A DNA stretch of 62,937 nucleotides, filler included, from Octopus bimaculoides (taxonomy: Eukaryota): NCBI RefSeq assembly GCF_001194135.2. It is 3 parts of 3 records of this genome, joined end to end, with 100 filler letters (N's around TTAATTAATTAA, not from the genome) between each part and the next. Parts side by side here need not be neighbours in the genome. Positions count along the whole stretch, not along the records: positions 28,937 to 58,132 come from NC_068988.1; 2 more parts are not named here. The stretch is one strand, 5' to 3'. Shown piece by piece: positions 31,191-52,850 of the stretch (position 1 is its first letter; each line of letters opens with the position of its first letter). The position numbers and the translations under genes are program-made. A model generated the notes under the pieces. The model ran no database searches. It worked only from the letters and a program-made list of their open reading frames with translations, and had not been told where the DNA came from.

Positions 31191-31257
<67 letters not shown>

Positions 31258-32121
31258 NNNNNNNNNNNNNNNNNNNNNNNNNNNNNNNNNNNNNNNNNNN
31301 NNNNNNNNNNNNNNNNNNNNNNNNNNNNNNNNNNNNNNNNNNNNNNNNNNNNNNNNNNNNNNNNNNNNNNNNNNNNNNNNNNNNNNNNNNNNNNNNNNNN
31401 NNNNNNNNNNNNNNNNNNNNNNNNNNNNNNNNNNNNNNNNNNNNNNNNNNNNNNNNNNNNNNNNNNNNNNNNNNNNNNNNNNNNNNNNNNNNNNNNNNNN
31501 NNNNNNNNNNNNNNNNNNNNNNNNNNNNNNNNNNNNNNNNNNNNNNNNNNNNNNNNNNNNNNNNNNNNNNNNNNNNNNNNNNNNNNNNNNNNNNNNNNNN
31601 NNNNNNNNNNNNNNNNNNNNNNNNNNNNNNNNNNNNNNNNNNNNNNNNNNNNNNNNNNNNNNNNNNNNNNNNNNNNNNNNNNNNNNNNNNNNNNNNNNNN
31701 NNNNNNNNNNNNNNNNNNNNNNNNNNNNNNNNNNNNNNNNNNNNNNNNNNNNNNNNNNNNNNNNNNNNNNNNNNNNNNNNNNNNNNNNNNNNNNNNNNNN
31801 NNNNNNNNNNNNNNNNNATAATGCTAGATTATTATACATCGTAGTCTCTGATACAAAGAAAATGTAACGGTCACAGCAGGTATTCATTTTAACCATAGGT
31901 TTTTTTTGGGTGGGGGGGGGGCGGTGTCTGGAGAGAGTCATTCTATTTTAATGTCTTATTAATTAACACACTCAATGGTTCGATTTCCACACTTTTTTTT
32001 TTCTAAAATTTTCGTTGCTTCTTGCAACCTCTTTAATAGTTGTTGACTCAGTCCGTTCGTTATCAGAGCTGCGCTCATTTTGTTTGTTTGTTTGTGCGCA
32101 TGTATGTGCATGTGTTTACAC

Positions 32122-32869: not shown

Positions 32870-34215
32870 AAAGTGTTTGAAAGGGTAGTGAGACCAAGGA
32901 TAACTGGCTTCTTGAAGAGGCATAACATTTTAAATTCCAACCAGCATGGCTTTCGCTGCGGCAGTGACTGCCTAACACAGCTTTTACATCACATCAATGA
33001 TGTACCTAAAGATTTGGGATCAGGTTCGAACTCTGATGTCATATATCTTGACTTCAGCAAAGCGTTCGACAGAGTCCACCACAATATCCTCCTGTTAAAA
33101 TTGTCCAGTGCTGGAATCCGTAATAAACTGCTGTACTGGATTAAGTGTTTCCTGTTGAACAGAACACATGTTGCGATTGGTGGAATCCACTCAAAAGCCA
33201 CCAATGGCGTCCTTCGGGGGACTGTTTTGAGCTCGCTTCTCTTTATAATCTGTATAAATATCTCATGCGTCATCAAACACAGCAAAATAAAAAAATATTA
33301 GCAGATGACTTCAAACTTTAGAAAATAATCACCGGAGAATAAAATCGAATTAAACTCCAGCCTGATCAACATGCGGTTAGATGAGGGGAAATTTGTACAC
33401 ATGCCCTTTGGAAAAAAAAAGAATGCGCTCTAACAACCTTATTTTCTTCCTTCAGGTGAACTAACTCACAGCATCCAACAATATCAAGGACTTAGAAGTC
33501 ATTCATTGTTGACCACAATCTCGGTTGGACTACTCACATCAACCTTAAATTCGATATGGCTGGCAGGATGAGCTCCTGGATCCTCAGAACTTCTCGGTCC
33601 AGAGAGCAAGATGTCATCATTCCCCCTCTTTACAGCCACAGCTTGACTACTGCTGTCACCTGTGGTCTCCTTACACCAAACAAAATATTACGAGAATTGA
33701 GTCACCCCAGAGGGCAATCACTAAAAACCTAAAGGGCATGACTGATCTTAATTATTGGGACCTTTTATTTAAACATTGAAACTGTATTCTCTCCAGCGCT
33801 GCCGTGAGCGGTACATCATTTGCACAATGAGGAAAATATACAACCAAACGATCTTAATATCTAATTCAGGAATTCATCCAAGGCCATACACCCGCTACAC
33901 AATTCAGGCTCACGTAAATACACTACAACAATTTCTTTTCTTCAACACGCCCTACTCTATTTCACATTATCTCAATAGAAATCAAAGAAAAAGATCCCAT
34001 CAGCTTCAAACAATACCAGGACAAACTTCTTCAACGGTTACCAGATAAGCCACCCATACCTAGATACATCTCAGTCAACAACAAATCCCTACTTGAGTGG
34101 GCAATGATACCACAAAACTTGACTTAAAAATGACTTAACAGATCCTATCAGGTGACGCTATTAAGTTAGGCATGGCCTGGGCCAATCTTTGACCGAAACA
34201 TATCAAAGTTATCTA
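32870..34215 (+). mobile_element. CR1-like LINE, 5'-truncated RT and 3' end
   Basis: FERVV..RI..FL...NILNSNQHGFR.G..CLTQLL, DVIYLDFSKAFDRVHHNILL.KL and G...GTVL..LLFII.IN; later LDYC..LWSP-like and LYSLQR.RERY.I motifs. Confidence 0.88.
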
Positions 34216-34804: not shown

Positions 34805-37800
34805 TGTATGCATGTATTGTATGTATGTTTGCGGCCAGGTTGTTTGTGAGAAGTACAGGTAAAATGTACATCAGTATATTTTGTTGCATGGTTGGCTCGT
34901 CAGCGACTCAACAGGCACCCTAACCAAGTTTGCATGATGAGGTGGGTAACTTCGGACGCCAATTTCAACAACTATTTTTAACATGTCGAACTCGTAAGCG
35001 ATCTCTCGCAGAACAACACTAACATCATCAATGTTATGAATATTGTTGAATATCAGTATATATAATATGCGACGTCTTTGTGTATAAATGTTTTTTATGA
35101 GTAACACTTACGTATTTGAAGCTGTTGAATTTGTTCAACTTTATAATATTTGTTTTCTCAATCATTCGACACAAGCTGGAGTCATTAATTTTTCATTTTT
35201 TTTGTTTCTTTGTTTTATTTTTTGTATGTTTCATAATGCTTAATGAAACAGATTGAAGTTTTCTAAATTAACCAACAGCGTTTCTACATTATTGCTGCAA
35301 CAGCGCTCTATTTAGTTGTTCTGCTTGTCTTTTGTATCAGAAAGTTCATTCTCGTTTCCTAATGCTTGACTAATGTTTTAATGCTCATAAAGTTTGACGA
35401 TTTTTTGTGCATCGCAAAATTTATAAGAGATTTGTTCATCACTATTGTAGACCAAACAGAAAAATCCTTCCCTCTAAATTTTCAGACAAGATCTCCACTT
35501 ACTTGCTGGAGTTTATCTTTTGTATTCGGAAGTTGATTATGCTATCTTCATTGTCTCATAATTCTCCCGGCATCGCAACAGTCATAGTATGCTACTTTAG
35601 CGTGTGTTCTAGCGCACTATCTATATATCTATAGTCTACTCAGTGAAATTACCTAATCTGGGTTAGGGTTAGGATTAGGAACACTTTGAAATTACAGATT
35701 GAAAGTTCAAAAGGTCAAAGTATGTTAGTACTTTCTCATGTCTACACAAGAAATGTTATTCTTCTTGAACTTCTGCAGTGAATCATTCCTGTACAGAATT
35801 TTGAGAAAGATAAATATAATTTTCTTTTTTTCATATATTTTGGTATTTTCCTTTCCTTCTTCATCCTCTTTCATCCGTAACTTCTTCAATAACGTCGTCA
35901 TTATTGACGGATCGAGTACTCTAGTTGATAATAAAGGGCGTTCCAGTTGTGACCACCTCGCTGATTTGTAAATCAGTAACTGTTATTCAAAGTAGTATTT
36001 ACGACCGCAGGATGTGATCTGTGGGTGATTCAGGTACTGTTTCACAGAAGTTCAGTGACAATGTTTCGCCTCAAGATTGAGTCCTTAGAAGACAATTTGA
36101 GATGGGTGCAAAAAGTGATAAAATTTGAATGGTCTTCTGGGATCGATAAAACACTGAGGTCGATGTAATCGACTTACCTCATTCTCTGAACATAATGGCC
36201 TTCTGCCAAAATTTGAAACCAGTATTCCGGATGTTTTAATTTTGCATGTGTGAATGCCTGTTGAATCAGCAGACGAAATGAGGGAGACAACAATCTGATT
36301 GCCCGACATGCTAGAAATAACAGTCAAAGCGCTAAAAATTATTGTTCCACAATTCCACTTTTTCATAGTATCCTCTTCCCTAGCTTTTAGAATAACGCCC
36401 ACAGAAATATGGAATGCATCGGCCTAGTTTTTCCTATTCCCTAAACTAACTTATATGTTGTTGTTGTTGTCGTTTCTTGTATTTGTTTTTTGTTTTTGTT
36501 GTTTTCTGCCCCATCTTTTTTATTAATGAGAAACCGAAATAGAGTTTTCGTCCTATTTTCTTTACCTTAGTTTTAGACAAGTTTTACTTGTTTCAAATCG
36601 TCTCTAAAATCCAACACTGAAACACCGTTTAAGCCTTCAGACCGAAACAGTAAGTTGTGAATTTCTAAAAAATTTTCACTATATATTGTTTAACCATTGC
36701 GTCTTTAGATTCTTATAGACTTGCACCTAGCTCCTACTTCTGACTAAAAACGTGCCCTACCATTTGATTTGCTTCTTAGTCTTCAATTGTAATTCCATCC
36801 ACATCTAAGATATATTATAGCAGTATTTTTCATAGAGGATAAATAGCCTCCTGAGGTGTTGAGAAGATTAAAAAAGTGGGTGAACAAATCACCATATTTT
36901 ACAAAAAAAATAAGATTATTTAAAATAAAATCTCGCTTGTCCAACACCATGGCAACGAGAATACACGAGGTATTTCTTGAGAGTGTGAACCGGATCAGAC
37001 CTCTTTTGCCTCAAATTGGTTGATTCATATTTGCTGTACAGCTTTCTGACAGGCCCCATTTTTATTCATCTACTGCTATTTTATTGGCATTTTCTCTCCT
37101 TCATCTTGAGTTCCTTATTGGCATTTTATGTAATATACTTTTTGTCGATTTATAAATTTACTATAGTTTAAACATTTCATTTTTTTATCTTTTATGCAAA
37201 TGCATAAATGAGTTTTTATTTCCATAATAATTCTTTTATTTTTGCTGTAAAAGCGTTACATGTAAAAAGATTGGACCAGCAGGAAAATGCTGACTCAGGA
37301 GGGATGATAATGCAGCACAAGAAACGAAGAAGCTTAATGCAGCTGAAGTTTTGAATTGAAATTTTAAAACTGTCTTCAGTTTAATTCAAATATAAAGTAT
37401 ACTTCTCTCTTTAGATTTTTATTACCCCTATGAAGGAAATTCTATATGTAACTCCCTATATAATAAAATTTGGTGGCTAATGAGAGGAGTTGAAGTACTC
37501 GTATATGATAGAGATGCAGCCTTTTTTCATAACTGATCTTTCTCTCCTGTTTTCCCAACTTTGAGCTGACAGTTGGCATACAAAAATATGAGCTCATTTA
37601 GTGATGGGAAAGTGACAGAATGCAATTTAACTTACCTAGTGACAGTCAAACTAGGCTATAGAATCCTGTCAGATGAGAGATAAGTGATATGGTGGTTTTT
37701 GTGAGGTCTATGTTCTCCCACTAAAAAATGAAAAGGTATCCCTAATAAAGAAAAAGGATTCGATATTTACGCCCATGAAGCTATGAAAATTCAACACTCT

Positions 37801-38638
37801 TGGGCTCTCGATGCCCTAACCCAACTCTCATCCCAACACTTACGTCTTCTAAAAAGCTTGATCAATAAAACTTTTTTCTTCAAAATGCACCAAATTTAAT
37901 TTATCTTCTTCAAACAGCAAAAAACATTGGCTATGATCTCAATTAGTCATTTACAAGAAAGGATGCTATGAAAGAAAATACCCCTTTCAAATTTAACCAG
38001 ATTACAAAGATGCTACTGAAGTGCACCCTAATCTATTTTTAATCGTCTCCCTAATTTTTTAAAATCTGAAACTCAACCAAAAGATATATTATTTAAATTA
38101 AAATTTCAACTTCAGCTGCAATATTTTTAAGCTTCCTCTTCTTGCCCTGTACTTTTCCAGATTCAATAAAGAATTAACTGCGCCCGCATTTTCCTTGCGT
38201 ATAAATGGATATGCAATGCGTACACACACATACACACATATATATGTATATATAATTTACAGTGTGTGTGTGTGTGTGTGTATGTGTGTGTGTGGGTATA
38301 CATGTAAACATATATGTATATCTACGTACGCATACGTATTTATGTGAATGCATATTTGCGCGCACATGTATGAGAGAGAAAGAGTTTGTGCGTGTGTGTG
38401 AATGCTAAGTTAGAATTGAAAGCTTAATCTGGAAGCAAATTTTTTTTAATATGATAGAAGTTATACACATGTGTATGTATGTATGTATGTATGTATGTAT
38501 GTATGTATGTATGTATGTATGTATGTATGTATGCAGGGGTTGAAGGCAAGCAGCTCAAACAAAATAGAAATATATGGTAAATAATTTGAAAATAACATAA
38601 CTGAGCCATTCATTCGCATCAGAATTTTAATAATAATA

Positions 38639-39988
38639 TTAACATGAATGCTGCAAATATTCTGATGAAACACTTGCAAAAGGTTCGCGTTTAACTATTA
38701 AATCACAATAGTTTCCTGCGTAGTAATACACATGCATCGTCCGTGACGATCGATTCTGACCTGGTGGATCATAAGCTTTCCAGAAATATTCATCATTCGA
38801 TACACGAACAAGAGCTTCAACTTTTGTCATAAACATCACTGAAAATGCAAGAATTTGTTTATCTTCACGTGTTGTGTGGCCGAGTAATTTAGATCTACAA
38901 CTTGGATCCTTGTCATCACATTTGAAATTGTAATCTAAACGCATAGAAAAAATATCAATTATTTGTCGTAGTTTATCATGGAAGTTGATATTTCCGAAAA
39001 GAAAGATGCTGGCACACATGAAGAAGTCGGTGTTATCGCCACTATTAACACTGACATTGATTTCGGTACCTTGTTCCTGGACTTTTTTGTTTGCAGTTCG
39101 AGGTGACGCATTCTCATCGCTCTGGACAAATGCATCACAATTCATATTTTCCATCCGGTTAACTTCAACAAAGTCAATATTTTGAATGTAATACCGAAAC
39201 TTATGGTGAGTTTCTAACCTCATATTATGTTTGATCCAGTTTTCCACAGTTAACCTTTTATTTGATCCCAATATGTGTCTATTGGAAGTATTAGAAACAT
39301 TAGCATTTGTTCTGTCAGTTTTATCCAAATTCAGCAAAACATCTTGGCAATTCTTCATATTTGATATATGAGGTGAATCAATTCCAGAACTAGATTCCTC
39401 AGTTCGTTTTTCGTTTTCTGTCTTGTCATTTTCTAAACTCCCCTTTATAGGCTTCTCTTTTTCTTTTCCTGAATCGCATAATGTTAAATTTGAAATAGAG
39501 ATGTTGCCATTTTCTATGATTTCTTCTGTTTCCTCCTTTATACAAATACTTTCTTTTGCCAAAATATTTTTAACAGCTTCTTCACTTTCTATAACATTAT
39601 TGATGTCTGGTTCGTTTTCATTTTGATTTAGATTATCATCCTCTGATTTATCTTTCACGGGAAATACACTTTTCCCCCCTTTTATTTCAACAATTCTTTG
39701 CGAATTCGAAGCAAACGGAACGCAACGATACTTTCTACTGTCACTCTTAACATTTTCTTTTGGTAAGTTTTCTCTTCTTTTCCCTCCTTCAGTCTGCATT
39801 GAGTGACTTCCTGGTCTTTGAGTTCTTGTGGTTGAATAAAACGTTTCACAACCAACAAGCCATGATTTTCCTTTCCGATATTTTTTAGTAACAATTTCTG
39901 TAAAACGCTCCTCCATATACACTGAAGAACCACCATCGTCAGACCAATAATTTGAATTTTCGTCCATTTTTTCTTTATCATCAGCCAT
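38639..39988 (-). CDS. Single-exon ORF (449 aa from MADDKEK): long acidic/low-complexity N-terminus plus C-terminal degenerate OTU-like domain (predicted catalytically inactive)
   Basis: 1350 nt open frame in AT-rich, TE-dense DNA. The track start at 40009 is TTG; the first ATG is at 39988 (aatATGG context). The C-terminus has the OTU layout: GDNTDFFMCASIFLFGNINFHDKLR (cf. GDGNCxFRAxSxxLxGxxxxHxxLR), KQILAFSVMFMTKV (cf. EI.AxAxxF), and MHVYYYAGNYCDLIV (cf. GNHYDxx). Confidence 0.8.
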   Translation of the reverse strand: MADDKEKMDENSNYWSDDGGSSVYMEERFTEIVTKKYRKGKSWLVGCETFYSTTRTQRPGSHSMQTEGGKRRENLPKENVKSDSRKYRCVPFASNSQRIVEIKGGKSVFPVKDKSEDDNLNQNENEPDINNVIESEEAVKNILAKESICIKEETEEIIENGNISISNLTLCDSGKEKEKPIKGSLENDKTENEKRTEESSSGIDSPHISNMKNCQDVLLNLDKTDRTNANVSNTSNRHILGSNKRLTVENWIKHNMRLETHHKFRYYIQNIDFVEVNRMENMNCDAFVQSDENASPRTANKKVQEQGTEINVSVNSGDNTDFFMCASIFLFGNINFHDKLRQIIDIFSMRLDYNFKCDDKDPSCRSKLLGHTTREDKQILAFSVMFMTKVEALVRVSNDEYFWKAYDPPGQNRSSRTMHVYYYAGNYCDLIVKREPFASVSSEYLQHSC

Positions 39989-40479
39989 ATTTAAGAAGAA
40001 TATATACAAATATATATATTTACAGACGAAAAGCCAACCGAAATGAACGTCGTTTGGAAACGATGGAGTCCTCCCGTGTGCTGAGAGAGAAACCCTTACC
40101 TGTGTTGGGACAATGATAGTTCAATCCAAAATGTTTCACACTAGACACAGTAGACTAGTTTTAAAACAACGATTTCATAAACAACACAGGTCTTTAAGCA
40201 AAACTGAAGCTAAAAGTATTCAGTTAAAGGAATTTTCAACATTAATTTTATTGATTTATTGCAAGAGAATAAAGTCATATGATTAAAGACGTTTTCAAAA
40301 GTTGTTACGTTTTGCGTACGTCATAAACAAAATGCTTCAAAACATGAGTTAAAAACGTTGTAATAATAATCATAGCTACTATTCAAATTTTTGGAGTGTT
40401 TGCTGATTATATCAACTTCAGTACTTGACTAGTACTTTATTTTATCGACCCAAAAAGCAATCGTTCTTTGTCTACCGTA

Positions 40480-42110
40480 TTTCAGCGAAAGTACTTTGCG
40501 TTTTCTGCTGAGTCGCGACAGGTCGTCGAGCTGGGAACTAAAGTCAGCTAACTTTTCCTATCCGTCGCTTTCCCCGAACATCTGCTCGGAACCGAGTAGC
40601 ACGTGCCCGTCCCGATCCGTCAAAGACCTCTTTGTGGCTTTTCGTTGCCACATCATGCCTCCACCGCTCGGACCCATCGGAGGGCCTTTATCCCATCACA
40701 TTTAAATGTAAATACCCTGACAACAGACCCTTCGTATTCGTGTATGAAAACATGGTCAAGTGTTGCTTCCGCAGCTAGTACAGCGATCGCGATATCTTTA
40801 CTAGTTGCCTCCCTCAAAACTGTTCCGCTCTATTGAGAGCCCTTTACTAAACGCTATCGATTCTGATAGAATCACTTTCTTTAGGGCGACCCGGTTGTTG
40901 ACGATTGCTCATGTCAACCACCTTTAAACTAATACACTATTCTACTCTCTGTAGTCGTTGCATGCCGGTATGGACATGTTCAACTTCCAGACATTAGGTT
41001 CCTGTCTATGGCTACTAAGTCGGCTGAGCAGATCACACATTTGTGATCTGTGCAGCCGACCAGTTGAACTATGGGCATCTTACACTACTCATTAACCACT
41101 GGCCTAATAAATACTTTATCTAGATCCGATCTTGTTGTTTCGCTGTAGTTACTCCATGTCCATACTAGCATATCAGGGAAGTCCAGTCAAAACCTGTGAA
41201 ACTCTTGGAAACGTTTGAACAGGTATTCAAGGCCTTTGTCCTCTTTCTCCTATGCGTGAGCTTCATACAGTCCTTAATTGCGTCTAAAATACAATTCCAA
41301 TCCCTTACTAATAGTAATCGGAACGTCTCAAGGAAAGCTTCAAGACATCTGAAGAAATCATACTGCCCCGCCCCAACAGGGGTCGGACGGGTCACAAGTT
41401 TTGAGGCACTCGCATTGTTGCCATTTACGTCAATGACCACCAACATACCAACCGGGTCCAGGAAGATTACTCGTACTTTGATATGTGAGGATTTCCAGTA
41501 TAACACGGCCACCTTGCTGTCTGATCTGGATAGACCACGTGATATATGAAGGTTTCCTTAGCGGTTCGGGTGGTAGTTTGCGGGTGTTGTGGAGCTGAAA
41601 AAGAGTCTACCATTTGATAGGGATGCGAAATATATATTTTTTTTTTTTTTACCAAGTATGTTATGTTGTGTTCATTGTCTAAACTGCTTCAGGGAATATA
41701 CGAGTAAATCCCTTGTGGAACATGGTGTGACTGTTAATTAAGACGTGCCGTGAATGTGGTGGAACATACCTGAGAGTATGATATCAGCTGATTTAAAGAA
41801 CCTTTGGGTCCAGGATGAAAAGGCATCATTGTGCATTTGTGGAAGTTTAGTAGCTAGAACGCATGAAGCAATATACGAGTGATCCGATAGGTACAGAGAC
41901 AGTGATAATTTCATCGCGGTGAGTTTGAAAGTTAGAAAATGATAGTGTTCAGAGTGTCTATAATAGTGAAGGATGCGTATAGAAGAAACTAACTGATGTA
42001 AATAATTGAAGGCTGTGAAAGATTCGGTTTCTGCATCGGCGGTATCAGTGAAAGCCATGAAAAGATGTGAGCAATGAAGTCATAAGAAATGATGGCTTCA
42101 CAAAGAATTA
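40480..42110 (-). mobile_element. L1/Tx1-like LINE remnant (ORF1 end, APE endonuclease, start of RT)
   Basis: 41165-41512 translates to VAVL...G.LVVIDV...FF..LE.FL...LLLV.DWNCILD, an APE endonuclease. The downstream segment resembles the linker before RT. Many stops. Confidence 0.65.
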
Positions 42111-42346
42111 TGAAGGTGAATGGAATATATGAACTTAGTACAGATAACTTACATTATTTTTGAATTGTGCATGCAAAAACATATAAGATACAGGTATTCT
42201 TTTTTGTGGGGACAAATTCTTGACCAGTGTTATTCTTATCGTAGCTTACAAATCCAAACACGAAAACGTTACTCAACTTTGAAGTTTTGGAGACAGACGC
42301 CCCCTTTTCACACACACACACACACACATACACACACACACACACA

Positions 42347-42392
<46 letters not shown>

Positions 42393-42600
42393 NNNNNNNN
42401 NNNNNNNNNNNNNNNNNNNNNNNNNNNNNNNNNNNNTGCATAAAGTCTTCGATGATATAATGATACCAGAAATAAATCACTGCTTTAATCCCCTCTCAAA
42501 AAAACTACCATCCAATGAGTGGAACACCTCAAACAGCACGTTTTCACTCAAAACAACAACTCAAATGGAATAAAGAATACACGCATCACAACAATAACAC

Positions 42601-42638
<38 letters not shown>

Positions 42639-42714
42639 CTTACAATATATCCTATTGTTAAGAACATTTTACACAATCAGTCAATAAAACTCAAATGGGA
42701 TAATGAGTACACAC

Positions 42715-43084
42715 TTTATCCGCCTAAACAATGCAACGGGACCCGCTTGTTAATCAAGTCTCTGGCACCCCACTTTATTGAGTTTACTGGGTGCGGGAGG
42801 AGGGAAAATGTTTTCATTTCAAGGATGCACCTTTATCCCTCGGGGTCAGACATGCCGTTTAACTTCCGCAGATCGCAGTTCCCGGTGAAGCCATGCTTCG
42901 CCATGTCTATCAGCAAATCCTAAGGACAAAAACACTATCGGTGGCGGGCATTCATTTGGGGAAGCTGTGCTTTTCCCATGGGCAACTTTATGTGGCCTGC
43001 TCCCGTGTGGGTAGTAGAAACGCTCTTTTTGTGTATGCTCCTCAGGGCAGAAAACGCAATGTTGTCTATAGCGAAGTTTTATAG
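42715..43084 (+). mobile_element. Helitron PIF1-type helicase C-terminal fragment
   Basis: CNGTRL.IKSL, VFISR..L.PS.SDMPF.FRR.QFPVK.CFAMSISKS*GQTLSVAGI.L...CFSHGQLYVACSRVGS..L.VYAP.G...NVVY.EVL. Confidence 0.93.
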
Positions 43085-43365
43085 ACGTAGAAAGACGAAC
43101 AAGTCATCATTGCAGCCTATGTGGTTATAAACAGGTGATCCGGAAGTATTGGTCGGACATATTCTGAAACCATGGCAACATGACTCATAGGTTCTTCCTC
43201 TTCTTTATTGGACAATGCTGACTTCTCCAACAACAATGTTCACTCGGCCGATATCAGCTCTTGGCCAAGTTGCTCACAGAGTTAGGCTAGAAGGGCCAGG
43301 CCCCTTATTTTTTGTTAAGGCTGTTGGTAAGTTTTCCTTAGTTACTCCAATCTGGATCCCCAATA

Positions 43366-43585
43366 CAAACCTTCGAATCAACCTTCTCCAATGCAGATCT
43401 CTAATGCAACCTTACCCAATCCAAATCTTTGAGTCAACCTTTTTCACTGCAGATCTCCAATGCAAACCTTCGATGCATCCTTATCCAGTGCAAACCTTCG
43501 ATGCAACCTTCTCCAATGCAGATCTTCGAGGCAGATCTCCGAGGCAACCTTCTCCAATGCAGATCTTAGATGCGGCCTTTGCCGA
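43366..43585. repeat. Degenerate ~28-bp minisatellite built from 13-15 bp subunits
   Basis: Units such as caaaccttcgatgcaaccttctccaatg and cagatctccgaggcaaccttctccaatg, about 8 copies. Confidence 0.75.
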
Positions 43586-44212
43586 TAGTACCCCTAGGAG
43601 GAGTTAGGGCTAGATCGGAATTACTCCCGAGCCCCCTTTCGTGAGGTTAGCTTAGGCTTAGGTTAAGGCTTAGTTGTGATCTGAACATAACCTCTTCTGA
43701 TACAGAGGATTGGGAGCCCTTTTAGGCGTTCTATTTTCCTTGCCGGAAGAGCTCCCAACCCATAGGCCAAGGGGGGTTAGATGAGGGTGGGGATCGAAAG
43801 GGCCGGCATGTGCAACCTGATCACCTCTGCCGGTCAAACTCCCAACCCATGCGTTCCCGTCGTAACACTGATTCTGCAGAACTGGGTTGGATGTGAAAAC
43901 CAACTTTAAAGTATAAAAATAGATTTTTTTGAATCAGCAGTGTTGTGTTCGGTTAAGTCCTATTTGGGGTGAAAAATCAGATTCAATAAGATGTTTAATC
44001 TTTTCAGTTTTCCTTGTTTTTTCCGTTTTCGTGTTTATTAATTTTATCATTTTTTTTTCTTTGTTTTATTGATGGTTAACCAATTTCTTTAGTTGGGGGA
44101 GATAACCACAAGTACCGATATTTTTCATAAAACGGGGGAGGTAACCCAATTTTTTAATGGGGCTGAGATAACCAATAAGTACCAATAGCTCCTTTCCCCA
44201 GAAAAAGGAAAG

Positions 44213-44321
44213 TTTGGCTGCTATTTCTTGCACGCCCTGCTACCACGTAACAGATATTTCGGGTCCTTTATCGGAAATAGCTATTACGTGGTAGCAGGGC
44301 ATGCTAGAAGTAGCAGCCAAA
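44213..44321. mobile_element. Small foldback/MITE-like hairpin
   Basis: 38-bp arms tttggctgctatttcttgcacgccctgctaccacgtaa and ttacgtggtagcagggcatgctagaagtagcagccaaa with 3 mismatches, plus an inner stem. Confidence 0.8.
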
Positions 44322-45413
44322 TCTTTGGAGCTGAGATACGTTGAATGCACTCGAAAAACTTTTTGTAACAGTATTCCCTTGAGGCGATCATTCACTTATT
44401 TAGTTTTGTTTTAGAGTGAAAGAGGAGAAAGTGAAAGATGTATGAACATGTATATGAAATGGACGTGTGTGTGTGAGAGAGAGAGAGGGAGGAGAGTGCC
44501 ACTAACACATACATGAGAACGCACACGTTCATTCACTTACTCTTTCTCTCTCTCACACAGACACACACTCACACACATATGCACACGTACATACAAAAGT
44601 GATGTACACATATGTATTGATGTATGTACGTATACATGACCACACACCCCTTCACCCACTCTTTCTATCTATCTCTCTTTTTCTCTTTCTTTCTCTTTCT
44701 TCCTCTGTCTCTCTCTTTCTCACACTCTCTCTCTCTCTATTTCTCTCTCTCTTTTACACACACACGTCTATTTCATAAACACGCACATACATCTTTCGCT
44801 TTCTCGTCTCTTTCACTTTAAAACAAAAGTAAATAGAAATTTTTTACGGAAATTAACGAACTCGGGATGACAATTCTGAGAGTCAAAGCGAAAATCGCCA
44901 TTCATTTGAAAATAATTTTTAAAAAAACCATTAAAATATTGTCTGTTTAAAGAAAGCTAAAATATAAATACTTAGTTTACAGACAACTTACATTTTTGAA
45001 TTCACGTTCAGTTAAAAACATTTCTAAAAGATTGAAATATTGTGTACGTCAAATTGTCGACGTTTTTGTTTGTTTGTTTTTTCTTATATAGCGCGAAGAC
45101 TGTGCGTGTGTATATGTCACAGTCAGAGGACGTGTGTTTGTGTTGATTGACACGCCATGATATTCATTATATGTGTGTGTATTCTGTATGTGTGTTGACG
45201 TCACGGAAGCCATGTCCTTTTTTCGTCAAGAAATAACAAAGAAAAATTGTGTTTAATCGTTTTCATTAATAAATAGAGGTCCAAATACACAAAAATTTGT
45301 ATTGCACTGCCGAAGGTAAGTATGAAAATAAATATGCAATAAAAATTAAGATAAAATATACTATTTCTGAGATATTTTGGGTACACACAAACATCTCTAG
45401 AGTTCTAGTATTA

Positions 45414-45452
<39 letters not shown>

Positions 45453-46419
45453 GTATGTATGTATGTATGTATGTATGTATGTATGTATGTACGTACGTAT
45501 GTACTCAAGCGCGCACACATACGAACACAAACACGTGCACACTATATTTTACATAACGAGGCTCATATAACTGCTTCTAAATAATGCAATGCATTTGTTT
45601 TTGAATGAGTAATTTGATAAACATTTTCATACACATGATTTGGAGAGTGAGAGAAAAAAAAACAGAGTGCAAGCAAAAGGGAATAGAAAGGAAAATAGAC
45701 AGAAAGATATGTGCCTTCAACAGTATTTTAAGCTTGTCCTCTGTTTTCTGCATATTACTCGATGCAGCCAGCTTACATACGACAGGCTGGTTTCGTCGAA
45801 AGCTTTAATATTAGCGCTAGGATGAAAAAATATCGAATAGATTACATCAAACCATCATTTTTCAGGCATTTTCAGACTTAATTGCAAAACAATTTCTGGT
45901 AGACATTAGTTTTTGTGGCTTATCAAAAGTTTGTGGGAAACATTTTAAGCCAGAGGAATTAAGTGATAGCCACAAACGTATTCTGTGCAACAGTAATCAA
46001 TGAGTAATTCCTTGTTCTCTTCAGCATTTATTTTAACATCTAGCACAAAACTGTGGCAAGATTGAAAGTAACGATTAAATTACTTATGTCTCCGAAGACT
46101 ACTTGTTCTGGCAAACTGCGATCAGCTATCGGTTAATCATAAATTAGTTTACCAGGCAAGAATCATATCTAGATGTTTGGCACAACATTTTCTCGGCAAT
46201 AAGTTGACGTTCATAAGGAATGTTTGCACAGGTAAGATTAAATATGTTTTATTAGAAAATGATGTTTAATAAAAAGAATTTCGGTTTGTTTGTTGCTTTG
46301 TTGTTGTTGTTGTTTTGCTTCTTCTTTTTTCATTTACTTTAGTTCGATGCAGTTTTCAACATATGAAACTACACTTAACCTGTTAAATTTCAGAGTAATA
46401 ACTTCAGAACACAAACAGA

Positions 46420-46509
<90 letters not shown>

Positions 46510-46860
46510 TCTCTCAAACTTGAAACCTATTTAATGGATCCCAATATTCCTCTGAAAGTTCTTGATTGTTTCATACGATTTCCCTTAGCAAAGATTACTT
46601 TAATAATCTGAAATTTTTTGAAATTAAATTTATAATGAACTCTTAAGAAGAAAGTCGAATGCATTCTCATTTGCTGGTAAACATGTAATTGTCTGAACCA
46701 TGAGTTAAATTTTGTTTCTGAAATTAGGCACAAATATTTCTCTTCTACCCGTCTTCATTTATTTGTCACCTCTTTTGAGTTAACTCATATAGTTTCAGTA
46801 ACTTGACAGAGATTAGCTATTTCGTCTAATATCTAAATTCATTTAATATAAACATTTTGT

Positions 46861-46991
46861 GGCACTACTTAAATACAGAGGTCCCGTGGGGTTAGGGATA
46901 GTTTTTAGGGTTAGTTTTAGGGTTAGTTAGGATTAGGGTTAGGGTTAGTTTTGGGGTTAGTTTTTAGGGACCTCTGAATTTAAGTAGTACC
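46861..46991. mobile_element. Inverted-repeat element enclosing degenerate TTAGGG repeats
   Basis: 25-bp arms (46861-46885 and 46967-46991, 2 mismatches) around about 80 bp of ttaggg/ttagttt variants. Confidence 0.75.
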
Positions 46992-47324
46992 CATTTTGGT
47001 AGCTGTTAATTCTTGTCTATTCATGGAATCAAGATATCTTGTTAAATTCAACATTAATAAAAATTTCCTATTTCTACGTTTCAATAGTATTCGGCTGAAC
47101 TGTAACTGTCGATGTCTTACAGTAACACTCAACTAACGATATATTCAACACTTCAGTGTTAAGCAAATAATTTACAGTCATGTATGCTATCTAAGCGATG
47201 AGCAGCCAAATTATGTCTTCCTTCGAATAGTATTCCTCAAATTCAAATATTTCGAATTCTCCAATAGAAAAGAAAGTACCTGAGTGAGAATTTTAATTCT
47301 TAATTCCAGGGGTTATTTTAATTT

Positions 47325-50110
47325 TTTTTTATCTAGTTTCAGTCCAAGGATTGTGGCCAAGCTGGGGCAACGCCAACTGGTGTTGCTACACTTTCATTAA
47401 TCTCCTTTAATAGTTGGCATTTGGTGAGTGAGTGAGTTTGATGCTGCGCTCACTCCTGTTTTCTGCTGTGACTCTTGACAGTAAGAGATCCACTTTCGCT
47501 TTGAAGAGATCTACATCCGCACCATGTAGATCTTTTCTTCAGGAGGATATTGAAGAACTGTGGACCCTTAAATTTCAAGGTATTGCAGTATCTGGTCCTG
47601 TATTTTGACATCGGGGTGGGGGGGCACTATGTAATGGCGCCCTGTTCTGACGTTTGTATAACTTTCAACGCCAAAGTCTGGGACAAGCTCTTCCCGGAAC
47701 ATCTAAATGTATATTACAGCAAATCTTTCTTGCCTTCGTTCCAGGGAGTAAAGTTTTAACCTCTTGGGTCTTTCGCAGTAACTAATCTGCTTCTATGAGG
47801 CTCTTCCCCGTACAGCTTCGCTGAACCGCTTCGAGTTCTGCTATTAATTTCACGCTAGGCAGTGGCCACAGTAGGGAGCAATAGTCAAGACGGTTTTGGA
47901 GAAATGTCCTCCAGAGGACCATTAAGGTTTCCTGCTCTCTTGTTCTGAAAGTTCTAAGAATCCATCCAGTCAGCCGCCTACATTTCTTTGCCAACTTAGT
48001 AATATGTACATGGAAAATTGCATCACTACTCATGTCAATGCCCGATTCATGCTCTGACTGGGATCCTGGAACTGCGATTCCTCCAGATTTTGTTTGCATC
48101 GGATTTAACTTAATCTGCTGATAGCATCGAGCTTGTAACTTTCCAGCATTAAACTGCATATTATAATCGTCAGCCCACTTGTATATTGTATCTAACCTTT
48201 ATTGCAGGTGCATGCCATCTTAAGGGTTTCTGTTACCTGTGAAACTTTTGTATCATCTGCACAGCTCGTGAGGGTGGCTTTCTGTGCGGATGCTAGCATA
48301 TCTAAGAGGACCACTATGATCGGCAGTGGCCACAAAACAGTGCCCTATAGGACACCGCTCATTATTTGTTTCTTTGGAGTAACCTCGTTGCCTACTACCG
48401 CTTGATTTCTATCTTTCAGAAACTCATGCAACCACTCTCCTAGTTCCCCAACTATGCCGAGATTATGCAGCTTTTGAAATATCATTCCATGGACTTTATC
48501 GAAGGCCTTCGCAAAGTCGAGTTAAATCACATCCACATTTGAGTGGTAAAGCAGCTGTTTCAACACCCAGTTATAATATTGCAAGAGCTGGGTATCAGTC
48601 AGCAAGTCATTTTCTTCCAGGAACGTGATTAGTTTACTTCGGACTATCCGTTCTATAACTTTCCTGGTATGCGGGATTAGAGAAATAGGCCTATAGTTTT
48701 TGGCATCCGCTCTGTTATCTCTTTTATGAATAAGCATATTATTCCTTCCGTCAACCTACCTGGGAGCTTGCCACTTGCAAAGAAACTCTGTTAGACTGCA
48801 GTGGCTTTTCTAGGGCTCGTTTATACGATTTTAGAAAGATTGCTGGGAAGCCATCAGAGCCAGCAATTGAGTTTGGGCTTATTTCGCCTATGGACAGCAT
48901 TACACCCGTTATATCAATGTAATCAATTGTTACTGCCTCCTATTTTAAATCGACAGGTTTTCTGACTTGCATGTGCTACAAGGGTTGGGTGACAATACTT
49001 TTGAATTGTTCATTCAGCGTTTCACCTTTCCTGTCAAGGAGCCATCTTCTTGGAGCACTGAGGCAGTTTCTTTGACGAACTTAAAGAAGTTTTGGGGTTT
49101 GATTTTATATTTTATATAACCCAGGCTTCTTTGTCTGCTCTCTCTCTTTTTCATGGGAGCATTAAAGGTGTTTCTCAATCTCCAGCAGTGTTGTTTTTGG
49201 GCGGGACTTTTCACTGCCATTGAGTTCTCTGTTTATGCGGTTTGCAATCATTGTACGCCATCTTATATTCGTTTACTATATGTTGTTTTACACCTATTAC
49301 ACTTTTTTTTTTCATTTTTATGCTCGGGTCAAAAACTGGAAGTTAACCGAACTTTTCTTTCCCTGGGAATTTTGTTCTTATGTACAGTGGCCTTTCTCTC
49401 CTAGACAAATTTGTAACATACGGCTTGCATCAAGGACATGCGGTCTTTAAGTTTCATGTCAATGTCAGGTTTGTAGAGATGTTGAGGTCAGTCCTATTTT
49501 AAGATCTCTTTCTCAATGGATTTCCAATCTGCTTTATGAAAGTTCAGATTGGATAAATTTTGGATGCTTCTCATAGGCTGCATGTCTGCGGATTTCTTTG
49601 GTCCACACATGGTTAGCTCTATTATATTGTGATCTGAGACTAGCATCGGTGTCACTTTCACATTATATATATATCCATATTGTTTGTGAAACAGAGATCA
49701 AGTATATTGTTTGCCCTGGTTGGTTGGAGTACTACCTGCTCCATGTATAACGTGTTGATGAGGTTGAGAAGGGAATCCACCAGTCTTTATTCACACCGCA
49801 TTATTCCTTAAAGGAAATTGCCCCCAAGTCATCCTACATTGGGCAGTACTATGAGAAGTACACTGATGTGTTGCTCTAATTTAGTTAGGACTTCTATTTT
49901 TGCAGGATAGTCTTCAAATATGCCCGTCTGATTTGGCGCATCTGGTGGGCGATAAGTAGAACATTTAACCATATCGCGTAGTTTTATTTCTACAATTAGT
50001 GTTATACACACGGTTTAAATATGACAAAAGGACCTTGGGCATGAGATCTTCACGGATGTACATTGCAACTCCACTATGACTCCTGTCTTTTCTGACCTAT
50101 TGCTTTGCTA
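47325..50110 (-). mobile_element. CR1-like LINE (endonuclease, RT, 3' UTR), heavily decayed
   Basis: STYRPPDAP (endonuclease); AKNYRPISL...KVIERIVRSKL.TFLEENDLL.DTQ; LDFAKAFDKV; GVL.GTVLWPL; LDYCS.LW (RT region). Confidence 0.88.
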
Positions 50111-50430
50111 TGTTTAACCTTCAGCCAATTTTATCAAACAAATGAGCAATAAATGTATTTTACGATATGTTTGCAACAAACCATTTAAGTCCATAAAACT
50201 TTTAAAACCGAATATATCTTTAACTGACTTTTTATTCCACAGAAAAATTCTTTCAAAAATTATAACAAATGCTGACAGGTGCATAGAAATTGCATGTAGA
50301 ATAAAATTAAAATGTTTAATGTTACAGCAATAAAATTATTTTACAAATTTTCTAAAGTTTTTAATTAAATATTGGAATATATGTTCTCAAACACAGCTTA
50401 TTAGATCTTCTGGAACATTAGATAATTTGT

Positions 50431-51105
50431 TCAATTTTTCAAAATTAAGTCGAAATGATGTCTAGCTTCATTAAAAAGCTGTATAGAACAAATGGACACG
50501 TTGGGCCCGATACCATGCGGGGTAGTAGAGGACCAGAAATACGGAGTTTCATTTCCTCCTGTCAGAATATCTATTCTTCGGTGAAACAGATGTGCAGCAG
50601 CATATATTTCACACTCAGTAGCGCAAGTGTTAGTTTCTAACATTGATTTGATGTGTTCCAGTACAGGAACTTTCGGTTGTGGTGCTGGATGTTCATCGAT
50701 ATACAAACAGTACAAGTAATTCGCTACCAACACTCTGAATTGTCTGTGATATTTCGTACTACCAGTAAAATACTGAGACAAACATCGAAAGAAGGAGTTT
50801 CCGTCCTTAATTTGAAGAAGAATTTTCCATTGAGGGTTTTTGGTTTCTGGTGCTATTTGCTGTTCTGGACCATGTGGCATAAAATAAAACACTGGTTGAT
50901 TAAGCGAATCATTAGATTCTATTTCCCACAAATTGGCTGTCTGAGTTGACAATTCTTTCGATTCAGCATCTTTCTTTTGTAAGGCTTTTTGCTTCTGATA
51001 CTCATCATATACTTGGTGTTTTTCTGGATCACAGAGACATTCTTCTATATGTTGTTGACAAAGGGGTTTAGAACTATCATTTACCTGGCTAGAATCTCCC
51101 TCCAT
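50431..51105 (-). CDS. Single-exon ORF (224 aa) with C-terminal OTU-like domain, catalytic Cys replaced by Ser
   Basis: Motifs KDGNSFFRCLSQYFTGSTKYHRQFR, ATECEIYAAAHLFHRRIDIL and QLFNEARHHFDLIL match the OTU Cys-box, central helix and His-box. Real ATG at 51105. AATAAA on the minus strand at about 50231-50236, roughly 195 nt after the stop. Confidence 0.88.
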   Translation of the reverse strand: MEGDSSQVNDSSKPLCQQHIEECLCDPEKHQVYDEYQKQKALQKKDAESKELSTQTANLWEIESNDSLNQPVFYFMPHGPEQQIAPETKNPQWKILLQIKDGNSFFRCLSQYFTGSTKYHRQFRVLVANYLYCLYIDEHPAPQPKVPVLEHIKSMLETNTCATECEIYAAAHLFHRRIDILTGGNETPYFWSSTTPHGIGPNVSICSIQLFNEARHHFDLILKN

Positions 51106-52091: not shown

Positions 52092-52290
52092 ATGGATGCC
52101 AAAGTGTTCGAGATGAGCCTACCAGACGACCCAACTGAGGAAGATTATATTTACTGGAAACGGATGCTACATATCTACACAGCAGAAGCAAAGGTTCCAG
52201 ATGAATCTAAACTGGAGGTACTCTTAGTCCTCTGAAGAGAAAGGACCTACCCCATCGTCGAAGGCAGCAATAGAATGCCTGGACTCAAAA
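52092..52290 (+). mobile_element. Gypsy-type gag N-terminal fragment
   Basis: MDAKVFEMSLPDDPTEEDYIYWKRML..Y..EAKVPDESKLEVL.VL, followed by RTYPIVE..AAIECLD. Resembles Gypsy gag starts (recalled, not searched). Confidence 0.5.
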
Positions 52291-52850
52291 TTCAGGTAGA
52301 ATGGTTCTCACTGTCGATGATCTTGAAAATTGAAACTTTCTCTCATGAGAGGTTGTGTTGGTAGTTGTACAGGGGAATCCTCTCATGGTTGATAATGCCA
52401 CGGGGGGGAATGTTAACCATTGTCTTTTATCTAGTTGTAGTGAACTAAGTGCTAGATTTATGGTCTTCATGAGGGTACCGTGGGTCCTTTCACATTGGCC
52501 ATTGCCTTGAGGTCCATAGGGAGATATTTTAGTTTTTATTGTCCCGTTAGCGTGAAGGAAGCCCTGGAACTTCTTATTATCAAATTGGGTTCCTCTGTGA
52601 GAGTGGATACAACTTGGTGATCTAAACAATGAAAAGAGGTTGAGCAGGTGGGAAATTACTGTTTTGGTACTCATGTCTTTGCATGGGTATGCGAATGGGT
52701 ACCTTGAGTACTCATCGACTATTACCAATAAGTAGCAGCATTGTGTGGTTGATAGCAGGGGACCAACAAAGTCAATGGAGAGGCGCTCCTAAGGTCTCGA
52801 TGCCTATAGTAATTGACCCCTATGTAGTTTTTGGAAGCGGGGTTTAAGTT
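52290..52850 (-). mobile_element. Gypsy LTR-retrotransposon integrase core
   Basis: ERLSIDFVGPL...YLLVIVDEYSRYPFAYPC, IHS(H)RGTQF and SPY.PQGNGQCERTHGTL form a DDE integrase with the second Asp mutated. Confidence 0.92.

Follow-up and report, generated by a model that had tools for sequence, protein, structure and literature searches.

Two neighboring single-exon genes on the minus strand of the Octopus bimaculoides genome likely descend from one duplicated deubiquitinase (DUB) gene and form a tandem array in coleoid cephalopods. One gene (ORF2) bears Ser at the catalytic Cys position of an OTU domain, and the other (ORF1) has a pseudo-OTU domain. The window, i.e., the whole stretch of DNA that was analyzed, is 62,937 nucleotides long; both genes are in the part derived from NC_068988.1 (positions 28,937 to 58,132), and all coordinates are positions in the window unless a contig is named.

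Two intact host genes in a conserved tandem arrangement

The initial annotation described two long, intact ORFs on the same strand, and these were found at 38639-40009 and 50431-51105, 10,422 bases apart. The remaining ORFs of ≥120 aa in the piece were N runs, microsatellite or tandem-repeat products, reverse transcriptase (RT) or integrase fragments, and unannotatable ORFs amid retroelement fragments. An rve fragment lies 1.2 kb upstream of ORF2 (52285-52728), and two RVT_1 fragments are at 54512-54967 and 32873-33301. The main features of the locus are as follows.

38639-39988, minus strand: ORF1, a 449-aa CDS from the likely ATG, plus stop (ORF list)
50431-51105, minus strand: ORF2, a complete 224-aa CDS from ATG, plus stop (ORF list)
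42309-42436, no strand: (CA)42 microsatellite, then an assembly gap (N, 42393-42436); intergenic (TRF)

Taken mechanically, ORF1 has 456 aa from a TTG at 40009, but the true start is likely the ATG at 39988, which gives a protein beginning MADDKEK... that matches the ortholog P0003. Residue numbers for ORF1 (323-441, 328, and 434) follow the 456-aa numbering.

Both coding sequences are uninterrupted and colinear with genomic DNA or contigs from other species. Logan contigs match the genome colinearly, and both genes are intronless. There is one copy of each gene per locus. The paralog cluster that had been proposed holds as one of just two genes. The assembly gap is 2.4 kb upstream of ORF1 and, because it is intergenic, no frame of interest spans it. 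Its flanks match the O. vulgaris chromosome with order and orientation kept (41866-42392 to L002:7761-7232; 42789-43943 to L002:6028-4898). The 10.4-kb spacing of the ORFs is approximate, since the window is ∼800 bp shorter than O. vulgaris at the gap.

The tandem layout recurs in other cephalopods. The decapod contig L003 has the same order and strand (OTU gene at 1885-2541, ORF1 homolog at 10001-11554). The window is also colinear with the O. vulgaris chromosome, where the end of ORF2 is 9.9 kb upstream of ORF1 and the ORF2 ortholog is visible at its last 17 codons only. The ORF2 contig of another octopus, L001, runs parallel to the window in colinear fashion as far as 51794, where the contig ends. 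Thus, the tandem arrangement is old, being matched in order and strand in the decapod and in part in O. vulgaris.

The initial annotation held that the two frames had stayed open while nearby transposable elements decayed, and it proposed dN/dS as a check. Overall dN/dS was 0.22 to 0.29 for ORF1 and 0.20 for ORF2, well below 1 in both genes, and in the OTU domains it was 0.04 to 0.07 for ORF1 and 0.08 to 0.09 for ORF2. Two further conserved modules of ORF1, described below, gave values of 0 to 0.05 (N-terminal) and 0.2 (middle). Both genes are kept by purifying selection and are genuine host genes, not transposon remnants; we infer that both are expressed.

ORF2 as an OTU-fold protein

The features of ORF2 are as follows.

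50434-50838, minus strand: OTU domain, residues about 90-224 (Pfam OTU, family profile versus PDB, AF2, and Foldseek)
50794-50796, minus strand: Ser104 codon (TCC) at the OTU catalytic Cys position, DGN-S-FFRC (alignments to OTUD1 and OTUD3)
50449-50457, minus strand: His217-Phe-Asp219 (HFD), the retained triad His and acidic residue (alignment to OTUD1 GHYD)

As judged by sequence profiles and a structural model, ORF2 is an OTU-fold protein, as the initial annotation had it. The octopus protein scored 21.8 bits against Pfam OTU (E = 2.8e-4), which is below the 23.3 cutoff, and the decapod orthologs (P0006, P0007, and P0018-20) passed at 36 to 41 bits. A profile of the family matched OTUD3 (9.3e-10) and OTUD1 (5.5e-8) in PDB. 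The AF2 model has a pLDDT of 80 to 93 in the OTU domain, and its top Foldseek matches were human OTUD3 and OTUD1 (4bou and 4bop; E = 3e-8 and 1e-7; TM = 0.75 and 0.73). Although these are the best matches in both sequence and structure, identity is just 21 to 26%, and in octopus Ser replaces Cys. OTUD3 has a C-terminal UBA and OTUD1 a C-terminal UIM; proteins of the ORF2 family stop 3 to 7 residues past the His loop and have neither the UBA nor the UIM region. An ortholog from another octopus (P0001) is 89% identical to ORF2. The cuttlefish ortholog is annotated "OTUD3," which is probably a mere best-hit label and not a sign of orthology.

The nearest relatives of ORF2 outside the cephalopods are uncharacterized bivalve proteins, whose OTU domains are 36% identical to that of ORF2 (E = 4e-10). 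These proteins (e.g., Mercenaria mercenaria LOC123559526, P0010) have an intact active site and differ from ORF2 in length (320 to 355 aa), with an extended N-terminal region and a tail at the C terminus. The Mercenaria gene LOC123559526 encodes 352 aa in a span of 1.9 kb that cannot be translated straight through; the gene appears to hold an intron. The bivalve genes have an RPB7-like gene as neighbor, which is absent at the cephalopod loci.

An intronless pair amid retroelement debris such as the rve and RVT_1 fragments could be the remnants or cargo of OTU-bearing mobile elements or viruses, open by chance or because insertion was recent, and OTU domains are found in many viruses. This origin is highly improbable and close to refuted: the orthologs are syntenic in O. 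vulgaris and the decapod at one copy per locus, very few clusters turn up among 5.8 and 1.84 billion database proteins, domain dN/dS is 0.04 to 0.09, viral OTU structures match ORF2 less well than do OTUD3/OTUD1 (2e-6 versus 3e-8), and the related genes of bivalves belong to the host and have a conserved neighbor.

Loss of the catalytic Cys of ORF2 in octopuses

The HFD motif does not vary among the seven sequences compared from the family and from bivalves, and the decapod orthologs have the full DGNC...H-x-D active site. The codon at position 104 is TCC in octopus L001, as in the window, and TGT in decapod L003. The second octopus species, with the identical TCC codon, is ∼0.24 dS away. P0011, an independent record identical to the ORF2 protein of the window, also has Ser. 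Judging from these codons, Cys loss is confined to the octopus lineage and has become fixed in two or more species of octopus. The initial annotation had treated ORF2 as a member of a pseudoenzyme family, which does not hold for the decapod proteins; it had also reasoned that orthologs with Cys would reduce the substitutions to individual polymorphisms or errors. Such orthologs exist, but the TCC codon in the second species and P0011 rule out sequencing error and polymorphism. A-to-I editing that restores Cys was also excluded, as the TCC codon of ORF2 has no A and the corresponding GAC of ORF1 would give GGC.

Octopus ORF2 might still be an enzyme, in which Ser104 would serve as nucleophile in a Ser-His-Asp triad, perhaps slower or with altered specificity (e.g., for ester-linked ubiquitin). 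The other active-site and fold positions are all intact. In addition, constraint on the domain matches that in the decapods with Cys (dN/dS = 0.08 in octopuses versus 0.06), and octopus ORF2 is no further from the bivalve outgroup than decapod ORF2 is (36% versus 33% identity). Some supposed pseudo-DUBs have, moreover, proved active (review, PMC10919355; USP53/54, PMC12037411). We nevertheless consider a Ser enzyme unlikely, given that the octopus protein falls under the Pfam OTU cutoff. Cys-to-Ser replacement is the standard inactivation of OTU and other papain-fold DUBs, in which the oxyanion hole and the geometry of the His are suited to a thiolate, and we know of no natural OTU with a Ser nucleophile. 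"Catalytically dead" Cys-to-Ser OTU mutants made in the laboratory, commonly used as inactive, substrate-binding controls, have the same lone nucleophile change as octopus ORF2 and an otherwise intact site. The difference is that they are engineered, whereas in octopus the change has been fixed in a natural lineage and is maintained under purifying selection. By analogy with these mutants, octopus ORF2 would be inactive or nearly so.

The C-terminal domain of ORF1

The features of ORF1 are as follows.

38687-39043, minus strand: degenerate OTU-like (pseudo-OTU) domain, residues 323-441 (hhalign versus the ORF2 family)
39026-39028, minus strand: Asp328 codon (GAC) at the catalytic Cys position, DNT-D-FFMC (invariant in 5/5 family members)
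38708-38710, minus strand: Tyr434 codon (TAT) at the catalytic His position, N-Y-C-D-L-I (invariant in the ORF1 family)
39821-39928, minus strand: conserved N-terminal module, residues 28-63, SSVYMEERFTEIVTKKYRKGKSWLVGCETFYSTTRT (octopus versus decapod alignment)
39155-39259, minus strand: conserved middle module, residues 251-285, KRLTVENWIKHNMRLETHHKFRYYIQNIDFVEVNR (block in alignment A2)

ORF1 has orthologs in O. vulgaris (P0002, 91%) and elsewhere (P0003, 88%; P0004/P0005, 44 to 45%), and its family makes up just two 50%-identity clusters among 1.84 billion representative proteins. The family is restricted to cephalopods. The description "lineage-specific" therefore stands for ORF1 and fails for ORF2, given its bivalve relatives (36% identity). 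The N-terminal module hardly differs between the octopus and decapod proteins; it has no match in Pfam or PDB and no known relatives.

We take the C-terminal 120 aa of ORF1 to be a remote, degenerate homolog of OTU. All four motifs previously reported as common to the two ORFs, FFxCxS (FFMCAS in ORF1, FFRCLS in ORF2), G-x4-H-x3-R (GNINFHDKLR, GSTKYHRQFR), YFW-x4-P-x-G, and DLI, are present and colinear. The third is not private to the pair, as had been claimed, because the bivalve OTU proteins also have Y-x-W-x4-P. BLASTP of ORF1 against ORF2 gave E = 1e-9, and the Smith-Waterman score of the domains was 100 versus 27 ± 4.4 for shuffled sequences (Gumbel P = 3e-10). All 15 pairs of domains compared beat the shuffles (P = 1e-2 to 3e-10). 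With hhalign, the two families matched at 66 to 80% probability, and the domains by themselves at 90.5% (E = 1.4e-6, 117 columns); the domain profile-profile score of 46.2 was reached by 0 of 300 column shuffles (maximum, 22.8; z about 13). The match spans 108 to 117 colinear columns, and the OTU landmarks all occur in the correct sequence, from the Cys loop through the G-x4-H-x3-R and E-x-x-I-x-A helices and Y-x-W to the His loop with Asp. Predicted helices are in register (ORF1 327-337, 344-360, and 381-403 versus ORF2 104-114, 120-136, and 164-174), the AF2 model of ORF1 being of low confidence (pLDDT 29).

On the other hand, HMMER searches of Pfam and PDB with the ORF1 family or domain gave no match even at E = 10, and a library-wide profile search with ORF1 found nothing beyond its own family. 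The assignment of ORF1 to OTU therefore rests on profile-profile comparison and on its likeness to ORF2. On this basis, the claim that both proteins end in OTU-related domains is upheld. The signal owes most to the octopus ORF2 proteins and less to the decapod orthologs with Cys.

The domain may instead be unrelated to OTU; a short helical domain could have come to resemble ORF2 by convergence or by chance, and ORF1 would be an orphan gene next to an OTU gene. This would agree with the empty Pfam and PDB searches, with HMMs from ORF2 or bivalve OTUs that score ORF1 no higher than shuffled decoys, with the marginal similarity of ORF1 to decapod ORF2 or to bivalve OTUs when each group is taken separately, and with the poor ORF1 model. 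We judge it distinctly improbable in view of the long colinear match with its landmarks in order (E = 1.4e-6, z about 13) and the 15 of 15 pairs above shuffles. Against Cys-keeping OTUs alone, the ORF1 domain still scored 33.7 (E = 1.9e-4), above 100 of 100 shuffles. ORF1 and ORF2 are also neighbors in both octopus and decapod, as tandem duplicates would be.

The two genes lost catalytic residues by different substitutions, as initially proposed: Cys to Ser in ORF2, and Cys to Asp plus His to Tyr in ORF1, where Asp436, which follows Tyr434 in the motif, is retained. With both Cys and His lost, ORF1 cannot be a cysteine protease.

Discussion

The nearest precedent is the OTULIN (FAM105B) and OTULINL (FAM105A) pair of vertebrates, whose human genes are chromosomal neighbors. 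Like the proposed cephalopod pair, it consists of an active OTU enzyme and a pseudo-DUB relative, and Asp139 of OTULINL has its counterpart in Asp328 of ORF1. The likeness is limited: ORF1 profiles run against all PDB chains found no sequence relation to OTULIN/OTULINL, ORF2 is nearest to a different OTU subfamily (OTUD3/OTUD1), OTULINL retains His where ORF1 has Tyr, and in octopus the "active" partner, ORF2, has also lost its Cys. OTULINL, the best-studied OTU-class pseudo-DUB, in which Asp139 replaces the catalytic Cys, has an extra N-terminal targeting/interaction sequence and does not bind ubiquitin (PMC7862380); it thus lends no support to a decoy role.

The tandem pair most likely arose by duplication. 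In the explanation that we favor, a small intronless OTU deubiquitinase gene would have duplicated before the octopus-decapod split. The upstream gene, ORF2, encodes a disordered N terminus and little beyond an OTU domain, and the decapod ortholog is presumably an active deubiquitinase, given its full Cys-His-Asp site. In the octopus lineage, a TGY-to-TCC change would have turned the nucleophile into Ser, while the remaining site and the fold stayed under strong, unchanged constraint. Octopus ORF2 would then act by binding, as a natural trap for substrate or ubiquitin or as a partner subunit, although the unchanged constraint fits equally well with a Ser that retains some hydrolytic activity. 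The downstream gene, ORF1, would have gained long, rapidly evolving linkers along with two new conserved modules, and would have lost its Cys and His before the octopus-decapod split.

The notion of a paralogous pseudo-DUB pair thus survives in its paired OTU-related domains with an altered Cys, but not for the decapod orthologs of ORF2, which retain the active site. We infer that ORF1 is a pseudo-deubiquitinase acting as a scaffold or regulator, and its OTU-like domain and two extra modules would be protein-binding surfaces. Pseudo-deubiquitinases are already known, and ORF1 and ORF2 would add a modest new example.

The ORF pair and its surroundings

The piece at 28937-58132 (NC_068988.1) contains two long intact open reading frames (ORFs), both on the minus strand. 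This observation of the initial annotation was confirmed as a whole, and the four motifs that it had listed as shared by the two products were all found, in colinear order. The features of the piece are as follows.

31258-31817: another N gap, bordered by (GA)n, source of the bogus ORFs at 31162-31941
32873-33301, plus strand: decayed RVT_1 fragment (Pfam)
38639-40009, minus strand: ORF1, 456 aa from TTG
42393-42436: N run, intergenic, 2.4 kb upstream of ORF1, abutting a (CA)42 repeat
43355-43567: tandem repeats with nested units of 28, 56, and 69 nt, source of a spurious ORF at 43215-43607
46889-46969: interstitial telomere-like (TTAGGG)n array between ORF1 and ORF2
47893-50125: 2.2-kb stretch just downstream of ORF2, without counterpart in the aligned Octopus vulgaris chromosome
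50431-51105, minus strand: ORF2, 224 aa from ATG
52285-52728, minus strand: decayed integrase core fragment, 1.2 kb upstream of ORF2
54512-54967, minus strand: decayed RVT_1 fragment (Pfam)

ORF1 likely starts at the ATG at 39988, which matches the start of its orthologue in another octopus (P0003). The remaining ORFs of at least 120 aa consist of N runs, products of microsatellites or tandem repeats, reverse transcriptase (RT)/integrase fragments, or unannotatable ORFs among those fragments. Across the piece, no Rfam family scored at or above its gathering threshold.

Neither ORF frame runs through the N run at 42393-42436. Positions 37489 to 50485 are colinear, in the same order and orientation, with O. 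vulgaris chromosome OX597821.1 (locus L002) across this gap, at which the window is ∼800 bp shorter than O. vulgaris. The two ORFs thus belong to a single continuous stretch, in which they are approximately 10.4 kb apart. The stretch at 47893-50125 probably represents a lineage-specific insertion, located within the 3′ untranslated region (UTR) of ORF2 or close to it. The ORF at 47782-48159 (minus strand) has no Pfam match; to us it resembles the C terminus of a LINE reverse transcriptase. The 3′ flank of ORF2 (50126-50430) is 95.6% identical to O. vulgaris, versus 86 to 91% for most neighboring aligned blocks, and the block at 45430-46314, which holds no sizeable ORF, is 94.9% identical; both are candidates for conserved UTR or regulatory elements.

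ORF2 is an OTU protein

The Pfam OTU profile (PF02338; MEROPS C85) matched residues 101 to 218 of ORF2 with 21.8 bits (E = 2.8e-4), just below the 23.3-bit cutoff; the two decapod orthologues that were scanned, P0006 and P0007, passed it with 41.4 and 36.5 bits. With phmmer, ORF2 matched the OTUD1 structure at an E value of 1e-4, and the profile of the ORF2 family reached OTUD3 at 9.3e-10 and OTUD1 at 5.5e-8. An AlphaFold2 (AF2) model predicts the structure of residues 90 to 224 with pLDDT values of 80 to 93. When this model was compared with the PDB by Foldseek, the best 50 matches were all OTU domains, led by OTUD3 (4bou; E = 3e-8, TM score of 0.75) and OTUD1 (4bop; E = 1e-7, TM score of 0.73). 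Viral OTUs, searched in a viral fold library, were poorer structural matches than the cellular ones (best, 2.4e-6). By both sequence match and predicted fold, ORF2 is a genuine OTU protein.

Octopus ORF2 has serine at the catalytic cysteine position

In the alignments, Ser104 (DGN-S-FFRC, codon TCC) occupies the position of the OTU catalytic Cys. The Cys of the D-G-N-C loop is missing from the octopus ORF2 proteins compared, namely, that of the window and P0001, P0011, and P0012, all of which have Ser. P0011, a separate database record, is identical to residues 22 to 224 of the window protein, and a second octopus, ∼0.24 dS away (P0001 and P0012; contig L001), has the same Ser encoded by the same TCC codon. 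All the more distant orthologues (P0006 from contig L003, P0007, P0018, P0019, and P0020) have DGN-C-FFRC; the codon, which was read only in L003, is TGT. One of them, P0018, is a cuttlefish protein annotated as "OTUD3 [Acanthosepion pharaonis]." Hence, the active site was complete in the ancestral ORF2 gene. Judged by these orthologues, the Cys-to-Ser replacement is confined to the octopus lineage, where it is fixed. A-to-I RNA editing, considered as a means of restoring Cys, was ruled out by the codons at the nucleophile positions, TCC in ORF2 and GAC in ORF1.

The rest of the active site is retained: His217 and Asp219 (H-F-D) stand at the catalytic His and acidic positions and are invariant in alignment A3. 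Most likely, octopus ORF2 is inactive or very weak and acts by binding. That Ser104, His217, and Asp219 still hydrolyze is an unlikely alternative, although some "pseudo-DUBs" (pseudo-deubiquitinases) later turned out to be active, and reviews urge caution (PMC10919355; PMC12037411). Activity of the Ser form would make it the first natural OTU known to use a serine nucleophile.

A probable OTU-derived domain in ORF1

The octopus relatives of ORF1 are P0002, a "hypothetical predicted protein" of O. vulgaris (91% identity), and P0003 (88%); the decapod-type relatives P0004 and P0005 are 44 to 45% identical. When 1.84 billion representative proteins were searched with the ORF1 profile, only two clusters came back, both of them the family itself. 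Conservation is concentrated in three blocks, residues 28 to 63, residues 251 to 285, and the C-terminal residues 323 to 441, and the linkers between these are fast evolving.

Several searches gave no assignment. Neither the full protein nor the C-terminal domain alone matched Pfam (HMMER), and the ORF1 family profile, full length or domain, retrieved no PDB chain at E values of ≤10. Local HMMs built from ORF2 and from bivalve OTUs scored ORF1 indistinguishably from shuffled decoys. An AF2 model of ORF1 built from a five-sequence alignment had a mean pLDDT of 29, too low to be of use.

Direct comparisons of the two families did give a signal. BLASTP of ORF1 against ORF2 had an E value of 1e-9, and 15 of 15 domain pairs scored above shuffles (P values of 1e-2 to 3e-10). 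With hhalign, the full alignments of the two families matched at 66 to 80% probability; restricting the comparison to the domain gave 90.5% (E = 1.4e-6, 117 columns, score of 46.2), a score that none of 300 column shuffles reached (maximum, 22.8). Against only those OTUs that bear the catalytic Cys (decapod and bivalve), the domain still scored 33.7 (E = 1.9e-4, 115 columns), above 100 of 100 shuffles. The C-terminal block of ORF1 is thus very probably of OTU ancestry; we infer this homology from sequence and not from a demonstrated fold.

In these alignments, Asp328 of ORF1 falls on the catalytic Cys and Tyr434 on the catalytic His. Both are invariant in octopus and decapod members, and Asp436 is kept. 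ORF1 cannot be a cysteine protease. It would instead act as a scaffold or regulator, with the OTU-like domain and the two private modules as putative binding surfaces.

Putative transcripts, synteny, and selection

The coding sequences of both ORFs are uninterrupted and colinear with contigs of other species. Decapod contigs carrying the ORF1 orthologue (L005 to L008 and L023 to L026) are ∼2.8 kb long, come from many independent runs, and have nearly the same ends, which fall at homologous positions in two species that are 6% apart. Those carrying the ORF2 orthologue (L013 to L022) are ∼1.5 kb long and come from at least 10 runs. The recurrent ends look like those of discrete unspliced mRNAs, but the contigs are colinear with genomic DNA, which leaves expression of the two genes putative.

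A transposon or viral origin came into question, since the two intronless genes sit amid RT/integrase fragments. Decapod contig L003 carries both genes on one strand, first the OTU gene (1885-2541) and then, 7.5 kb farther downstream, the ORF1 homologue (10001-11554); in O. vulgaris, the final 17 codons of ORF2 are found 9.9 kb upstream of ORF1. The contig of the other octopus, L001, stops at 51794, before reaching the integrase fragment at 52285-52728. Each locus has one ORF1 and one ORF2.

In the locus of the cuttlefish Sepia pharaonis (L010; CAHIKZ030001671.1:217989-238702), the 10 kb that follow the OTU gene contain no ORF1 homologue, and protein searches returned no ORF1-type protein under that species name. 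The intergenic region of L010 is expanded relative to that of L003, as shown by a landmark that follows the OTU gene by 2.1 kb in L003 but by 8 kb in L010.

dN/dS of ORF1 and ORF2 (Nei-Gojobori method, own script)
Region; comparison; dN/dS
ORF1, whole; octopus species; 0.22-0.29
ORF1, pseudo-OTU domain; octopus species; 0.04-0.07
ORF1, N-terminal module; octopus species; 0-0.05
ORF2, whole; octopus species; 0.20
ORF2, OTU domain (Ser); octopus species; 0.08-0.09
ORF2, OTU domain (Cys); distant decapod pairs; 0.06

The ORF1 domain is 58 to 60% identical to decapod members, and dS between two decapod members is ∼1. The dN/dS values of the OTU domain of ORF2 are similar in octopuses (Ser) and decapods (Cys); thus, the thiol was lost without relaxed constraint on ORF2. 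Taken together, the dN/dS values, the synteny, and the single copies exclude pseudogenes and transposon debris. For the loci and protein databases searched, a transposon or viral origin was rejected on the same grounds: there is one copy per locus, orthologues are syntenic, and database clusters are very few. Both ORFs are host genes under purifying selection, and their tandem arrangement is old.

Likeness of ORF1 to octopus ORF2

Every ORF1-family domain, the decapod ones included, is far more similar to the Ser-bearing octopus ORF2 (Smith-Waterman scores of 69 to 100) than to the Cys-bearing decapod ORF2 (41 to 49). The initial annotation had called YFW-x4-P-x-G private to the two ORFs, but Y-x-W-x4-P also occurs in bivalve OTU proteins; what is common only to ORF1 proteins and octopus ORF2 is P-x-G after Y-x-W and, in the region of the His loop, DLI[LV]K. 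The likeness could stem from ancestral states that were kept, from convergence once catalysis had been lost, or from old gene conversion. A drift of octopus ORF2 to an ORF1-like surface (P-x-G, DLI[LV]K) could account for it. The fuller reading, in which ORF1 and ORF2 form a DUB/pseudo-DUB module that in the Octopus lineage became entirely non-catalytic or Ser-nucleophile as ORF2 drifted toward an ORF1-like surface, is in our estimate improbable.

Relation to known OTU proteins

The closest analogue in kind is the vertebrate pair OTULIN/OTULINL, in which OTULIN is an active OTU and OTULINL a pseudo-DUB relative with Asp replacing the catalytic Cys. OTULINL, which has an added N-terminal targeting motif, does not bind ubiquitin or LUBAC (PMC7862380). 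The ORF1 family profile showed no sequence relationship to either protein when searched against all PDB chains (E ≤ 10), which include structures of both.

The ORF2 family is nearest to OTUD3 and OTUD1 yet lacks their C-terminal regions, stopping 3 to 7 residues past the His loop. OTUD3 has a C-terminal UBA region after its OTU domain; ORF2-family proteins have no such region, and Pfam detected no further domain in those scanned. "OTUD3" is therefore a best-hit label. The nearest relatives outside cephalopods are uncharacterized bivalve OTU proteins with 36% identity and an intact active site. In two bivalve species (L011:7052-9897 and L012:1434-4287), this relative is head-to-head with a gene for a 172-aa RPB7-like protein (SHS2_Rpb7-N plus S1) that is 99% identical between the two. 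The RPB7-like neighbor is absent from the cephalopod loci examined, and microsynteny with the bivalve OTU genes was rejected on that ground. A literature search found no papers on cephalopod OTU genes.

The initial annotation had read the pair as OTU paralogs that lost catalysis by different substitutions. That interpretation is supported in part: the substitutions differ, with Ser in ORF2 and Asp in ORF1, but the loss in ORF2 is confined to the octopus lineage. The pair joins a known class, the OTU-class pseudo-deubiquitinases, and is not a new principle. Pseudo-deubiquitinases are a recognized class, small and poorly understood, with OTULINL as practically the only studied case of the OTU type. 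For ORF1, a cephalopod-only orphan now annotated "hypothetical," a likely fold and origin can be assigned. The locus is an independent natural example with a built-in comparison, an apparently active ORF2 in cuttlefish-type cephalopods versus the Cys-to-Ser form of octopuses, with selective constraint equal in the two, and this makes the role of an OTU fold after loss of its nucleophile directly testable.
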